Assembly (NCBI GenBank): GCA_943704425.1 | Contig: CALSCP010000883.1 | Location: 77,120-141,119, forward strand | Source: Ministeria vibrans ATCC 50519 | Lineage: Eukaryota > Protista > Filasterea | Length of the DNA stretch: 64,000 nucleotides | Reading direction: 5' to 3' | Shown here: positions 3,001-64,000 of the stretch, in pieces | Layout of the letters: each line of letters opens with the position of its first letter | Numbering within the stretch: the stretch's first letter is position 1 | Made by a program: the position numbers and the translations under genes | Notes under the pieces: generated by a model | Databases searched by the model: none | The model's input: only the letters and a program-made list of their open reading frames with translations | Told to the model about the DNA's origin: nothing

Positions 3001-6000
3001 GGGGTGCACTACTTTGTGACAGTTCGTGGACGCAACGCCGGGAAATTGTGGGCACAGGCGCTCTCAGATGGCTTTGTTGTTGACGGCACAGCACCCGTGG
3101 CGGCCACCGACGCGCTGCGAGTGGACGATTTTGACGTGACGCTGGGCTACCTCAACCAGGCGGTGTTGCAATTGTCGCTGTCGTGGTCTGCCTTTGAGGA
3201 GGACACCGACACGGAGATGACCCTGCATGTGTCGCTTGTGGACGAAACTGTCGCGCCGCCCCTGCCCATCGAGTGGCTTCTTCTGGGCGGTGTCGAGCGT
3301 GCCATGGGCCGTCACACCTTCTTCAACGTGTCACTCATTGTTGGTCATGCTTACCGTCTGCGCGTGCGTGCCACCAATCTTGCCAGTCTCTCAACTGTGC
3401 GCGCCACCTCTGCGCTTGTCTACGATCCCACTGCTCCCGCCGCCGGCATTGTGCGCATCTCGGCAGCCGTACCCGTGGCGCTCACACCGGTCAATGCCAG
3501 TGACGACTATGTGATTACAGGCGAAACGCTCTGCGTTGTCTTTGGCAACTTTAGCGACCCAGACGGCACACCCATGCTGAGCTACACGGCGAGCGTAAGC
3601 AACGACAGTCTCAGCGAGCACATTTTGTTCACTTCGGCGCCCATCGAGTCGACTGGCGCCCCCTTCTACCACGTTTGTCTTGCGCTCGCGCTCACGGACC
3701 GCAGCGACTACTACGTGCGTGTGGAAGGCACATCGGCAGCGGCGCTCACGTCGACTGCCGTCGCACCGTCCGTACGTGCTGTGCTGACAGGTCCCGAGGG
3801 CGGCGTCGTCTCGGACGGCCCCGAGGCGCCCTATGTTGACGAAGACTACATCAGTTGTATGGTGCAAGATCGAGTGTACGAGTCGCACTGGCATCAGTTT
3901 CATTCGGAAAGTGCAGGTGGCATTGATGGCTATCTCGTCAGTTTGTTTATCGATGGGGACACGACGAGTGTGCCGCTGGTGGAAGCGCAAGTGGGCGCGA
4001 GTGTGTCCAACTTTACGTTTGTCTTGCCGGCCGACGTGCAAAATGTCGCTGTGCACACGCGTGTGCGCGCATACAATCGTGCACGAGTATATTCGGACCT
4101 GATGAGCGACGGACTGCTGTGTGACACGACGGTGGTTGACACAAGTGCCATGACAGTACTGCCACTGTGCGAAGCCTCTCGTGTGCGTCTCACAGGCTTT
4201 GTTGTTGTCCGTACGCTGTTTACCTCCCCCGCTCAGGTGTACTTCATTTCGAACATTGGCGATATGTGTGTCTCGTGGAGCGGTGCTGAGGATCTCCAGT
4301 CGGGCGTGGCCAGCTATGAGGTGGCACTGTCGGCGCAGGAAGACGAGGACGACGCCGAGGTGTTCCGTTTTGCAGGTGATGCAACCGTCACGCGTTTTGG
4401 TGGCTTTGGTGGCGTCGCGAATCTGACGGAGCGCCATGGGCTCGATTTGCTGGTCCACTATGTTGTGGTGCGCGCTACAAACGGTGCCAATATGACGACG
4501 GAACATTCGTCGGGTGCCTTTGTGGTGGACAAGACTTCGGCGGTGATGGGTTCACTGAGCATCTCCAGCCTGGTTCACGTGGTGCCCGGCATTGGTGATG
4601 TGGCGCCGCGTGCTTTCTTGCCGAGCACCGACGAGTTGTGTGCGAGCTACATGGACGTGGCCGACCCCGAGAGTGGCGTGTATACCCTCGAGTATGGCGT
4701 GGTAGACGTACTGAATGGCTCATTGGTGCAAGAATACACCTCTCTGACAAGTGATGCCTCGGGAACCGTGTGTGTGTCGTCGCTTGGACTTGTACAGGGC
4801 CAGGCAGTTGCCATGCAGATGCGCGCCACCAACGGCGCTGGTCTCGTGTCGCTATTCCGATCGGACTCGGTTGTAGTGGACACGGTGGCGCCGACGGAGG
4901 GCACACTCGCGGTGCGCGACCTGAGCCCCGCTGGCTACTTTGTGGACACGCGCGATGTGGTGTGTGCCGTGTGGGACAATTTTGACGATGCAGTGAGCGG
5001 TCTCCAGAAGATGGAGGTGTCGCTGACAGATGTGGGCACGTCGACGTTGCTTGAGAGCACCGTGGGCTACAACAACGCGACGGCGGCGACGGCCGGTGCA
5101 GGTCTTGCGCTGGGATCGAGTGACGGAGTGTGCTTCAATCAAAGTGTGTTGGTGCAAGGACGTTCGTACCGCGTCACACTGGTGCTGACGGACTTTGTCG
5201 GACTTACGGCGAGTGCGACACGCGAGTTTCTTGTGGAGCGCACGGCACCCGTGATGACTACCAATTTCACGGTGCCATCGGGAATTGTGACGGGCACGGT
5301 GCAAGCGACGTGGGCCGTGGCCGACCCCGAGACGGGCATTGCAACGTGCGAATGGGGCTTTGGTACCCGGCCCAACATTATTGACTTGACAGCGCCGGCG
5401 CTGCTAGATGGAGCGGCGTGTCACACGGGTGACCTGGACACGAGTGTGATTGCGACAGGTATGAGTGCGTATGTGACGGTACACGTGACCAATGGCGCAG
5501 GCTTTCGCAGCACCTTCTCGTCGGCCGACTACCGCATGAATGCAGCGGTTGTGCGACGACGTCGTGAGACGACGAGTGACAGCAGCGGCGGCACCGACAC
5601 GATGCGCGTCATCAACACACCGCCCGTGGCGGGCGACGTCTACGACGGCGGGTCGCTGTCCGAACGTCGCTTTGACTACTCGTCGGACGCCACGCAGCTG
5701 CGCGTGTCGTGGGAGCGTTTCTTTGATCGCAACGTTGCGTTTGACATTGACGTTGCGATTGTGCAAAAGGGGACGCTCGAAGATCCGCGTCAGTACGACT
5801 TTAACACGGAGTTGGCTGAGGGCGCAGCGCTGTCGTCGTTTGGAACAGTTCTCATTGACTATGTCGCGGTGAATTCGTCGTTGCACAACACGTCGTTGAG
5901 TGCGGCGCTGCTCAGCGGCAGTCCGTCGTCGTTCCCGGAAGGAGTGCGTCTGAGTGCATGTGTGCGTGCGCGCAACATTGCCAATCTGGTGTCGCGCACT

Positions 6001-23172: not shown

Positions 23173-23542
23173 ACATATTTTAAACTATTCTTATTTATTT
23201 TCTTAATGAACGAGTTATTATTATAAACTTTTCACTTCCATTTATTCATTATTTTTGTTGTGGTATGAATCTGTTCTCATAAAATAAAATATTTTTAATT
23301 GCTACCAAAGAGATATAATTTGGTTTTTCTCAAATGTGGGGTCGACGTCAGCTTGTAGAACGGCCGGCAAGAAAATTAATCATTATTCCTACAGTCAAGA
23401 ATTGAGAATTGTATTGTTTCACTTTTCACTTTTCAGTGATTTCTCTTTTATTTGTGTATTTTCTCTGTTGTCATATTGTCGTCTTTAGCCAGTGGGTATT
23501 ATTTTCACGAGCAATCGCATTCTTTGCACTTTCTCAATTGAA

Positions 23543-25979
23543 ATGGAGGTACACTTCGAGTGTCTTAATAATCATTGTGTCTTTTTCCTGACTCGTCAAT
23601 TTGGCGTTCCTTTGACTTCCCTCCCTCCTTCGACAGTCGCAAGAAGGTAAAGCATGTCAACACGAAAGGGATCCGCTGCGCAGTGGTGCTGAAGGATGTC
23701 CCCATTTGACAGGACCGCCTCCGATTGTGTCGAGCAAGCCAACGTTTGTGCCTAAGCCGCGCACGACCGTTGTCAAGGCTCCCCCACGCCCTGCGCCTTC
23801 GCGAGACACCGCCCGACCGACCAACGCAGCGGCCGCGCCGCCTGCACCGGCCGAGACGCCCAACGGGAGGCAGACGGCCGTTGCCGATTCTGCGCCCAAC
23901 GCCGCTCTCTCGAAAGCACCCTCGTCCGGGAGACCCCCGCCACCGCGCGCGCCAGCAGCTGCAGCCAAAGAAGCAACAGCAACATCCGAACAGACGGAAG
24001 CGACGGGAAGGGAGACATCGCTGTCGCAGGCGCCAGTCAAGAAGCCTCCTGTTGCCGGGCGACCGCCGCCGCCGCGAGCGCCCGTCAAGAAGGGTTCGCA
24101 CACAACAACAACAACGGAGTTGACGTGGTCGTGTTAACACAGGAGTTGTCTTTCCTTCTTTTCAGAGACGAGTGAGGGATCCGTGAATCAGACTGTATCA
24201 AATTCAGAGCCAGTGCAATTGCAAGCACCACCACGAAAGCACGCTGCGAAAAAGGACAAGGAAACGGTAAGCAGACGTAAAATAAAAAAGCGACTCATTT
24301 ATGTTTGTTTCATCTATAGACGACAGAACGCAACGTTAGTCGAGAGCTCTCGCCTCAATCTTCAACGACAACAGAGACACCCACAGCACCAATACCACCA
24401 GTAGCAACCGAATCCCCCAAACGCGGTGCCCCTCCTCCCCGACCCGCTCCCCCGGCACGACCACCACCCCCAACCCGCAAACCAGAAGGTGCAAAGAAGA
24501 AAAAAGAAAGAAAAAAAAAGCGAAGCATGGTTGCAATAACACCCATACATTGTCAATCACTCTTCCGTCCAATTTTAGCCAACCGGTCCACTGCGCTCCC
24601 CACCGCCTCTACTAGCACCACTGCCTCCACCACATCCACCACTACTACTCCTTCTTCGTCGACCACCAGTGTCGCTTCCTCGTCTACTCCGTCAAAGGCC
24701 GATCTTGTTGAGAGTTCTCTTGTGCGCACCAGAACAACTCCCGCTCCCACGTCAAACGTGGTCGGATCAAAGGTCCTTGAAAACGAGCGGAATTCAAATC
24801 AAAACTCAGTGATCCATCATGTTTACATCAGTTTCCTCTCTAATCGTCACTCCATTATGTTTGCACGCTACACTTTTTCTTCATGCAATCCCATCCACTC
24901 GATCACACACACGGCATATTCCCCACAGACACACTCACACCCTCCACCACCACCACAGGTCCATAACGCCATTGCCCCACGTCGTCTCGAGCGGCCCCCC
25001 GACAGCGTCTACGCCGCTGCTCATGCCGCTGCCATGGTTGCAGCAGGTAACGAAGAGCCCGATGAGTATGCTCTCAAGATGATGATCCCTCAGGAGAAGG
25101 GTCTCGATCCCTTTCGCGGTGGTTTCCCCGGTAACTATATGTATCTATTGTTTAATCTTTCAATCTTTGTTTTCGCCTTTCTTCCTTTTACACTCTGACT
25201 CTCACGACGTCTTTACGTTTTCAAATCTTTCTTTTTTTTCACACACTTTCGCTCATCAACCATCTCAACTAAACAATGTTTTTAATCTCCCAACCATAAA
25301 CACACGCACACACGAATTATATCTATACATATTTTTATACATACTAACAACTCCCCACCCTCAGCGGTTGACCTCATCACCGCCGTCAGCACGAGCGGCC
25401 ACCGTGTCCCCGATGGTATGACTGTCCGTCGCACCTCCTGTGTCGGTTACCTCTACAAATTGGGTGCCATGCGCAAGAACTGGAAGTACCGCTACTTTGA
25501 ATTGAACACCATGTCGACCAGTCCCGATCCCAACGATGCTCCGGGACTGCGCTACAGAGTCGATCATACGTCGACGGAACTCAAAGTATCGTTAATTGCA
25601 ATTGCACTTTTTACTTTTTGTGTTTTTTTTTTGTTTGTTTGAGAGTACTGTCTCTCTCTCTCTATCACTTTGTATCACTTTGTTTCTGTCTCTTCACTTT
25701 GCTTCTTTCTCCTTCCTCTCTCTCTCTCTTTGCTTTGTTTCTTTTTCCTTCTTCTCTTTCTCTCTCTCTGACACTTGCTTCGTCTCTTTCTTCCATGCTC
25801 CTTAGGGGTTTATCGCCTTGTCGACTGTCAAGAGCGTCGAGATTGCCAATTTGCCGTCCGACGGTTTCTACTACTTCGACATCAAAGCGGGCGATCGAAC
25901 TTATCAGATGCGCACTTACAACAAGCAATGCATTGCCGTGTGGGTGGCGCTTCTCAAGGCTTGCATTGGCAAGTATTAG
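23543..25979 (+). CDS. Proline-rich protein with a C-terminal PH domain, multi-exon
   Basis: PxxP/RPPPPR-rich exons, then SCVGYLYKLGAMRKNWKYRYFEL ... GFIALSTV ... FDIKAGDRTYQM ... WVALLK, a typical PH domain. The 5' micro-exons (ME|SQE|GPPP) are tentative. Confidence 0.8.
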
Positions 25980-26399
25980 CTGAACCTGTGAAACTTTACA
26001 CTTCTATACTCAAAAGAAACCAACACCCTTTTTTTCAACCCTCGAAAAACACTTTTGTCACGATAAAACCCAAACTTCTCGTTTTATAGTCAAACAAGTC
26101 ATTTTTTCGATAGAGTGAGTGCCACTCCTCCGTCAAAGGTGCGCGAGAAAATTCTGGCTTGATTGAGCGAGTTGATCAGTGATCACGAAAATGATCAGTG
26201 AATATATAACGCGCCGTTTCCCTTAACAAAAGAGACCACCTTTACACGTGCATTGCTCTGCTTCTGTGTTGGCCATTCGTTGCCCGGACCGTGCGGCAGA
26301 GGTCTTTCTGGGCGCATAAAGTGAGCGAAAAGGACTTACAAAACACAGATTTATTTCACAATTGGACCGAATGGCCCACACGAGACGGTCGCACGAGAC

Positions 26400-26529
26400 A
26401 GCAGGAGATTCAGGGTTAGTTGTGATCAACTGATCGCAGCCCATTACGAGTTGTCTTTTTCTGACGCGAACATCCCTGTTCGACCTTCTACGGTCGGATG
26501 GCCCAATTGGATAAGGCGCCTGCCTACGG
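26400..26529 (+). tRNA. tRNA-Arg(ACG): Circularly permuted tRNA-Arg(ACG) with two T-loop introns. Exon order in the mature tRNA: 26492-26529, 26400-26417, 26447-26450, 26473-26486
   Basis: Reassembled 74-nt sequence GGTCGGA TG GCCC AATTGGATA AGGC G CCTGC CT ACG G|A GCAGG AGATT CAGGG TT|CGAG|T CCCTG TTCGACC T. It has a 7-bp acceptor stem, a D arm with G18G19 and Arg identity A20, a 5-bp anticodon stem, a 5-bp T stem with TTCGAGT loop, and an A15:U48 Levitt pair. Confidence 0.9.
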
Positions 26530-26541
26530 TCACCAGTTTCG

Positions 26542-26561
26542 TTTTTTTTGTTTTTTTTTTC

Positions 26562-26601
<40 letters not shown>
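26542..26601 (+). terminator. Oligo(T) Pol III-type terminator after the permuted tRNA trailer
   Basis: T8 begins 13 nt after G37 and is followed by further long T runs. Confidence 0.65.
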
Positions 26602-26602
<1 letters not shown>

Positions 26603-26631
26603 ATCATTCGACTTAATTCTTTCACAAATTG

Positions 26632-26744
26632 TATAACTTCGGTTATCCTTTGAACTTTCACCTTACGAGGTGACCGTGTGACCGTCTCACGACTCACGCC
26701 TGGCCGGGCGAGTCTTATTCGTCTATCGCGAAAGCATTTTTTTT
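26632..26744 (+). ncRNA. Candidate structured small RNA of unknown family
   Basis: Consecutive hairpins ATAAC-TTCG-GTTAT, TCACCT-TACG-AGGTGA, GACTC..GAGTC and GC-GAAA-GC, ending in T8. No family motif recognised. Confidence 0.3.

Positions 26745-46612: not shown

Positions 46613-64000
<17,388 letters not shown>

Follow-up and report, generated by a model that had tools for sequence, protein, structure and literature searches.

In the window, by which we mean the whole 64,000-nucleotide stretch of DNA analysed here, the two strands of the T stem of a tRNA-Arg(ACG) gene are separated by 58 nt where the 7 nt of a T-loop would be expected. The locus raises the question of what this additional sequence represents, whether it is removed from the transcript and, if so, in which order its parts would leave. 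Read from the sequence, we consider it reasonably likely that the locus is a working nuclear tRNA-Arg(ACG) gene that is permuted, with a T-loop that is split by two introns of the endonuclease type and restored by their ordered removal.

Layout of the permuted gene and its interrupted T-loop

The stretch from 26400 to 26529 on the forward strand is a circularly permuted tRNA-Arg(ACG) gene in which the back half comes first. The 3' half (26400-26486) is followed on the same strand by the linker TCTAC, the 5' half (26492-26529) and a T-run that starts at 26542 (Table 1). Exons and linker together amount to 79 bases. The initial annotation had recognised the inserts within the T-loop, which are indeed present, and mentioned neither the circular permutation nor the 1-nt slide of intron 2 described below.

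Removal of both inserts and exchange of the two halves, performed in silico on the window sequence, yields a product that ARAGORN recognises as a clean 74-nt tRNA-Arg(acg) with the T-loop TTCGAGT. At the locus itself, neither ARAGORN nor Rfam (at the gathering threshold and with E-values up to 10) calls a tRNA; a gene of this arrangement is invisible to both, and their silence is therefore no evidence against it. The proposal that excision leaves the loop TTCGAGT and a micro-exon of sequence CGAG agrees with the ARAGORN call, as well as with the same loop in an intron-less paralog elsewhere in the genome. A single intron, or one intron nested in another, was rejected as a parse, as no combination of a prefix and a suffix of the 58-nt interval yields a canonical T-loop. 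Rather, the single occurrence of CGAG within the interval makes the tandem parse into 29 and 22 nt unique. The boundaries of intron 2 can slide by 1 nt (59/60 or 60/61) with the same product, and the geometry of the bulge-helix-bulge (BHB) motif fits 59/60 only.

Table 1. Positions of the elements of the permuted tRNA-Arg(ACG) gene in the window, and of processing factors and further permuted tRNA genes in the host genome
Feature	Location	Strand	Description
Possible upstream Pol III promoter element TTTCACAATTGG	26354..26365 (-46 to -35)	+	Weak match to the ATAGCACAtTTtGG motif
Leader of the permuted pre-tRNA	26380..26399	+	Last bases ...GAC before A38; G(-3) can pair with C32, compare the eukaryotic anticodon-intron pair
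Exon a, tRNA positions 38-55	26400..26417	+	A38, anticodon stem 3' strand GCAGG, variable region AGATT, T stem 5' strand CAGGG, T54 T55; matches the paralog exactly
Intron 1, 29 nt, position 55/56	26418..26446	+	9-bp hairpin and 3' strand of the central helix; missing in the paralog
Micro-exon CGAG, 4 nt, positions 56-59	26447..26450	+	Sole CGAG between the T-stem strands
Intron 2, 22 nt, position 59/60	26451..26472	+	T5 tract (26456-26460) in the hairpin loop
Exon c	26473..26486	+	T60, T stem 3' strand CCCTG, acceptor 3' strand TTCGACC, discriminator T73
Linker TCTAC between the 3' and 5' acceptor strands	26487..26491	+	Identical in the paralog; RNase P and tRNase Z would remove it
5' half, positions 1-37	26492..26529	+	Acceptor GGTCGGA, D arm, anticodon stem 5' strand CCTGC, loop CTACGG; from ARAGORN on the in-silico product
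Trailer TCACCAGTTTCG, then long T-run terminator	26530..26602	+	T8 G T10 ... T30+; from the sequence
Catalytic Sen subunits (PF01974)	C1244, C1078		Two profile matches
Sen54-like (PF12928)	C1258		One profile match
Sen15-like (PF09631)	C1907		One profile match
RtcB (PF01139)	C2497		One profile match
Arg(TCT)			Permuted; 28-nt intron at 59/60 with T6 tract
Lys(TTT)			Permuted; 44-nt intron at 51/52 with T6 tract
Arg(CCG)			Permuted; 29-nt intron at 50/51 with T6 tract
Lys(CTT), two copies (L029/L030)	G000:C277 ~5100-5230 and ~23460-23590		Permuted in the T-loop at 59/60; upstream ATAGCAC motif, T10+ terminator

Two BHB motifs and an intron-less copy

The coordinates, helices and bulges first described for the two introns are present in the sequence to the base. 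A BHB consists of 3-nt bulges on opposite strands with a 4-bp helix between them, each bulge being cut after its second base (marked here by an arrow), with flanking helices of at least 2 bp. The motif of intron 1 (BHB1) has a 5-bp outer helix GATTC/GAGTT that includes G·U pairs (26407-11 and 26448-52), a central helix AGGG/CCAT with three of the four pairs and one G·A mismatch, bulges TT↓A and TA↓C, and a 9-bp inner helix GTTGTGATC/GATCGCAGC. With intron 1 removed, the motif of intron 2 (BHB2) uses the T stem CAGGG/CCCTG as an outer helix of 5 bp, followed by a central helix TTCG/CGAA with all four pairs, bulges AG↓T and CA↓T, and a 4-bp inner helix TGTC/GACG. The handedness of the motifs is that of the canonical 37/38 motif: the 5' bulge sits where the central helix gives way to the inner one, and the 3' bulge where it gives way to the outer one. 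Geometrically, 59/60 is to the T arm what 37/38 is to the anticodon arm.

Loose BHB criteria (three central pairs and flanking helices of 2 bp) match many places in any sequence, and the folds could in principle be coincidental, with a dead gene having received its inserts at random or as a small mobile element. We regard this as barely credible, since the two high-quality motifs lie at the only two pairs of junctions that restore the loop of the paralog, for which the joint chance is ~1e-10 or less, and since both handedness and cut positions are correct. The background rate of comparable motifs within the 64-kb window is ~1e-6 to 4e-5 per position pair. Two good motifs at the sole loop-restoring junctions are thus not a product of chance. 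No similar introns were found elsewhere in the genome.

The genome that was searched comprises 29.7 Mb in 2860 contigs and contains a second copy of the same permuted gene (G000:C491, locus L002), which has no inserts and bears the T-loop TTCGAGT. The two copies agree at every one of the 79 exon and linker bases. Their leaders and trailers, however, have diverged, and farther out than ~60 nt the flanks share 49% identity, which corresponds to the shuffled baseline. Gene conversion should have made both copies alike in having or lacking the introns. Identical exons within unrelated flanks are most simply explained by purifying selection on both copies, and this argues that the inserts are removed. 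Together with the unique parse and the correct handedness and cut positions, the intron-less paralog with its identical exons favours the proposal that the inserts are BHB-type tRNA introns at 55/56 and 59/60. Both are very probably real introns, for which excision is predicted.

The intron-less paralog also makes the window copy dispensable, and the latter might be a redundant copy, inactive or decaying, that gives rise to little or no mature tRNA while the paralog supplies the tRNA. In that case the inserts would be former introns, or sequences that still fold as such. The broken B box, premature termination at the T5 tract of intron 2 and the mismatched BHB1 (G·A) would be possible causes, and pieces of the leader, trailer and 5' half of the gene surround the locus as decayed fragments and as inverted repeats. 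However, a decaying copy would not be expected to retain 79 exon and linker bases with zero differences from the paralog while its leader and trailer diverged amid unrelated flanks, nor to keep both BHBs intact together with a long terminator. Moreover, permuted tRNA genes that are apparently single-copy carry T6 within their introns, and terminators in this genome are at least T8. We therefore consider decay quite improbable and retain the reading of a working gene.

A further tRNA-Arg(ACG) gene, different in sequence, non-permuted and with A37, is located within a tRNA array on contig C585, which also has eukaryotic genes. The tRNA-Arg(ACG) of E. coli likewise has A37. Given this non-permuted copy, the view that Arg(ACG) is encoded by permuted genes alone was withdrawn. 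Metagenomes yielded no match to a pattern that covers acceptor hairpin and linker, and seven matches to a pattern of the 5' half, all of them in ordinary eukaryotic, non-permuted tRNA-Arg(ACG) genes that share the D and anticodon arms; the T-loop TTCGAGT is present in five of these seven.

The surroundings of the gene contain several repeats. Upstream of the 3' half (26368-26399), CGAATGGCCCA ... ACGGTC repeats both the start (CGGATGGCCCA) and the end (ACGGTC) of the 5' half plus the trailer; these repeats fit an origin by tandem duplication of an intron-containing gene, in which case TCGCACGAGAC would be the ancestral 37/38 intron. Some 90 nt past the terminator, the region 26617-26688 contains a second copy of the promoter-like sequence TTCTTTCACAA, as well as a direct repeat, TTACGAG(T/G)TG, of the sequence that spans the junction between intron 1 and the micro-exon. 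The promoter-like copy is followed by inverted repeats of the pre-tRNA leader (26382-26395 and 26675-26688, 93%) and of the end of the 5' half with the trailer (26526-34 and 26669-77, 100%). The C491 paralog has no counterpart of the repeats at 26617-26688, which speaks against a trans-acting guide RNA arising from the downstream inverted repeat of leader and trailer. Further along the window, the segment 48001-50000 has a GC content of 0.285, strong GC and AT skew and overlapping long ORFs on both strands (47864-49373), and is probably a low-complexity repeat just upstream of a dynein heavy chain exon.

Transcription and the order of splicing

The B box is destroyed in the permuted gene. Approximately half of the dispersed nuclear tRNA genes, permuted ones included (L011-L028, L029/L030, L037, L039 and L047), carry the ATAGCACAtTTtGG motif (variants TATACCAyTTT and TATCACtTT) 25-65 nt upstream, which is probably an upstream Pol III promoter element. 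The related sequence TTTCACAATTGG that precedes the window gene could explain its transcription despite the loss of the B box. In the dispersed nuclear tRNA genes L011-L028, the first terminating T-run ranges from T8 to T34 with a median of 9, which suggests that Pol III in this genome needs long terminators. With terminators of at least T8 and T6 tracts in other introns, the T5 of intron 2 need not stop transcription and is probably read through; it could terminate some transcripts. We note that T4 is present inside mature tRNA sequences of L011-L028. The T-arm introns observed in permuted Arg and Lys genes (L031 on C437, L039 on C1993 and L045 on C335, as well as 26456-26460 of the window) all contain a tract of T5-T6, mostly within or close to the hairpin loop, for which a common origin, La binding or attenuation are possible explanations.

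The two BHBs depend differently on the state of the precursor. At the sites of intron 2, the unspliced transcript can form three of the four central pairs (TACG/CGAA), where an internal A·A mismatch leaves two stacked pairs beside the bulge, together with a 4-bp inner helix and no outer helix. Local folding of this form gives the inner hairpin of intron 2 alone, at -2.3 kcal/mol. When intron 1 is removed, the exact BHB2 becomes the minimum-energy fold at -11.2 to -11.9 kcal/mol, with its four central pairs and the 5-bp outer helix both appearing in silico upon loss of intron 1. These local folds agree with the initial annotation, in that the canonical BHB2 appears only in the model that lacks intron 1 and has its neighbouring exons joined. 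In the central helix of BHB2, T54-T55-C56-G57 pairs with CGAA, and T55 and C56 are separated by 29 nt prior to excision. BHB2 thus requires the ligated junction, such that the 4-nt exon would never be released as a free fragment. Since BHB1 and BHB2 share the micro-exon, three bases of which are taken by BHB1, as well as the 5' strand of the T stem, the two motifs are mutually exclusive.

The formation of BHB1 is equal with or without intron 2. The BHB1 conformer has an energy of -11.3 kcal/mol compared with a local minimum of -13.8 kcal/mol, a register-shifted pairing being better by 2.5 kcal/mol; with more context, the outer and inner helices are part of the local minimum-energy fold and the centre is ambiguous. 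In folds of the whole precursor neither BHB is dominant and a helix between the leader and intron 2 competes. We judged whole-precursor folding uninformative, because the cloverleaf of the mature tRNA is itself not its computed minimum.

Transcription reaches BHB1 before BHB2, and BHB1 greatly exceeds the unspliced form of BHB2 in stability; in Cyanidioschyzon merolae, the BHB of lowest energy is processed first (PMC3728597). On these grounds and from the structural dependence of BHB2, a fixed order, with intron 1 leaving before intron 2, appears likely. The order may be less than strict, as other introns in this genome appear to use relaxed motifs. In the permuted Lys(TTT) and Arg(CCG) genes, the T-stem introns show relaxed HBh'-like motifs with 3-4 of the four central pairs and no outer helix, to which the unspliced intron 2 is similar. 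The enzyme of this organism probably accepts such motifs and may therefore also act on the weak unspliced form. Both inserts could then be spliced with no obligatory order, the cuts at intron 2 being made in the unspliced transcript by an endonuclease that recognises relaxed motifs, either on TACG/CGAA with the 4-bp inner helix or on a three-way junction with a closed T stem. Indeed, the local minimum-energy fold of the unspliced T region has the T stem closed and both intron hairpins formed, and many relaxed motifs are used in C. merolae (PMC3728597). We nevertheless consider splicing in free order unlikely: only two stacked pairs remain beside the bulge owing to the A·A mismatch, the energy is -2.3 kcal/mol in the unspliced form versus -11.9 kcal/mol with intron 1 gone, and simultaneous cutting of both introns would set free the 4-nt exon. 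Even with relaxed motifs, BHB1 arises earlier during transcription, is far more stable and would still be first under the lowest-energy-first rule.

Judged as a strict BHB, the 37/38 termini are poor: two of the four central pairs form, the outer helix has 5 bp and an inner helix is missing. A C32:G(-3) pair and the 3-nt bulge AC↓A are, however, present here and kept in the paralog, which resembles the relaxed eukaryotic 37/38 motif. As this ordinary motif needs the folded body, the termini are probably processed last, as in C. merolae.

The pathway that we propose with ordered removal would begin with Pol III starting at the upstream element, passing the T5 of intron 2 and stopping at the long T-run at 26542. 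Pairing of the variable region and the 5' strand of the T stem with the micro-exon and the 3' portion of intron 1 would create BHB1, whereupon TSEN would cut between 26417 and 26418 and between 26446 and 26447, and RtcB would join T55 to C56. With T54-T55-C56-G57 now contiguous, the T stem could form and TTCG could pair with the CGAA of intron 2, thereby generating a textbook BHB with a geometry like that of a 37/38 intron. Cuts between 26450 and 26451 and between 26472 and 26473, followed by ligation, would produce the T-loop TTCGAGT. Once the mature domain has folded, the leader and trailer would be cut off at 37/38 and the ends joined into a circle, which RNase P and tRNase Z would open at the linker before the addition of CCA.

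The genes for the endonuclease and the ligase are all present, namely Sen2, Sen34, Sen54, Sen15 and RtcB, as a check on the TSEN and RtcB complement revealed. The interpretation originally attached to the introns holds insofar as TSEN and ligase genes are encoded and the canonical BHB2 depends on the loss of intron 1. Its further element, a TSEN whose special property is to act independently of the ruler in the mature domain, is unneeded: ordinary four-subunit TSEN cuts isolated BHBs in vitro (PMC10485636), so that no special enzyme need be invoked.

Scrambled tRNA genes of the host and their precedents

A survey of other tRNA genes for BHB introns, recommended at the outset and carried out by pattern searches with the D arm, uncovered further permuted Arg and Lys genes with introns or permutation junctions in the T arm (Table 1). 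The two Lys(CTT) genes run in the order T stem 3' strand, acceptor 3' strand, linker and then positions 1-59. Another locus, L047 (G000:C2431 ~223800-224100, minus strand), looks like a permuted tRNA gene, with an ATAGCAC motif, T arm, acceptor, the linker TTTTTTAAA, the 5' half and T7; it may have a further intron at ~43/44 and, possibly, the anticodon CCA. An earlier statement that most nuclear tRNAs are disrupted, which was based on an Rfam tally, was withdrawn, as the tally scores best candidates only and had missed ordinary Asp and Leu genes.

Dense tRNA arrays are located at L010 (G000:C585 35835-36763), L043 (C2083) and L009 (C2093), with (TTG)n spacers and short T-runs only. They include G34 anticodons (C2083), the Arg(ACG) with A37 (C585) and T arms that are near-identical across isoacceptors. 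Contig C585 also has an intron-split protein kinase and a DUF2452 gene, which places the arrays in eukaryotic DNA; they are possibly viral, or a second class of nuclear tRNA genes.

The genome bears eukaryotic marks, including axonemal dynein, ELP1, homologs of Sen54 and Sen15, and a mitochondrial contig. The latter is C1523 (L040-L042), which has 56 kb, 24% GC, many tRNA genes and a tRNA with the anticodon UCA (UGA read as Trp), and is the mitochondrial genome. A search of the genome for the light-harvesting protein family found none, and the best 120 relatives of ELP1 that carry an organism name are all from fungi, animals or Capsaspora, at 29-40% identity, with no algal sequence among them. 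Judged by its sequences, the host looks like a non-photosynthetic flagellate with opisthokont-like proteins.

The nearest precedent of the window gene is the tRNA-Gly(CCC) of C. merolae, which is permuted at 37/38 and whose T-loop is interrupted by a BHB intron at 55/56 (Soma et al. 2013, PMC3728597; Soma 2014, PMC3978253). Both genes are nuclear, with the 3' half upstream, the permutation junction at 37/38 and an intron at 55/56. In C. merolae, BHBs in the T-loop are processed before the 37/38 termini and the BHB of lowest energy is processed first (PMC3728597); removal of the T-loop intron before the termini was shown by RT-PCR for its tRNA-Gly(CCC) and is predicted for the window gene. In contrast to tRNA-Gly(CCC), however, the loop of the window gene contains a further intron 4 nt beyond the first, and the BHBs of the gene overlap such that the second depends on the first, whereas the BHBs of C. 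merolae fold independently and are 'not nested' according to the authors (PMC3728597, PMC3978253). Moreover, a Sen15 homolog is present in this genome and none in C. merolae, and the host here is apparently non-photosynthetic, with opisthokont-like proteins. A further known case has several BHB introns within one nuclear pre-tRNA that leave in a preferred order according to the stability of the BHBs, as predicted for the window gene; there, the introns reside in separate arms and fold independently, and the order is kinetic rather than structural.

Nested introns have been described for multi-intron pre-tRNAs of Thermoproteales where, according to the work cited in the C. merolae papers, the BHB of the last intron forms only after the other introns leave (Sugahara 2007/2008 and Tocchini-Valentini 2009, cited in PMC3728597 and PMC3978253). 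As they are summarised there, these archaeal genes resemble the window gene in the dependence of the last BHB and in non-canonical intron positions that include the T arm, but are cut by a symmetric (αβ)2 EndA, whereas the window genome is eukaryotic with a four-subunit Sen2/34/54/15. Given a eukaryotic host that lacks the setting of the symmetric archaeal EndA, the window gene would work like the nested archaeal family without being a member of it. Junctions at 59/60 of the T-loop are found in the permuted tRNA-iMet and tRNA-Tyr of Thermofilum pendens and in T-loop-permuted tRNAs of C. merolae (Chan et al. 2011, PMC3218864), which makes 59/60 a known and recurrent BHB site. As in those genes, the T stem serves as the outer helix, a position also used by intron 2, the Arg(TCT) intron and the Lys(CTT) junction; in T. 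pendens and C. merolae, however, 59/60 is a permutation junction and not an intron nested behind another. In the literature surveyed, reports of permuted tRNA genes come from algae, nucleomorphs and one archaeon only (PMC3978253, PMC13578239).

What appears to be new, as far as the sequence can indicate, is the presence of two introns in one T-loop, the 4-nt exon, the structural dependency in a eukaryote and the lineage itself; in the sources as cited above, dependent BHBs were reported previously in archaea only. It is possible, and we put it forward tentatively, that this is the first eukaryotic pre-tRNA with a splicing order fixed by structure, with BHB introns 4 nt apart in a 7-nt T-loop and a micro-exon that would never be lost.

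Eukaryotic tRNA introns outside 37/38 are very rare, and the endonuclease normally measures from the folded tRNA body. The T arm is part of this body and would remain unformed until both introns are gone, so that the enzyme must act on a local BHB alone, twice in sequence, before it turns to the ruler mode at 37/38. T-loop introns therefore bear on how the eukaryotic endonuclease recognises its substrates. The structurally enforced order and the 4-nt exon lead to the clear prediction that one splicing intermediate exists and the other does not, and the precursor would offer a natural substrate for the handover between TSEN and RtcB between rounds of splicing. The window gene and the scrambled Arg and Lys tRNA genes also illustrate that standard tRNA finders miss such genes completely. 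If the proposed reading is true, it would place nested tRNA splicing of the archaeal style, as well as permuted tRNA genes, outside algae, in an organism with a complete four-subunit TSEN.
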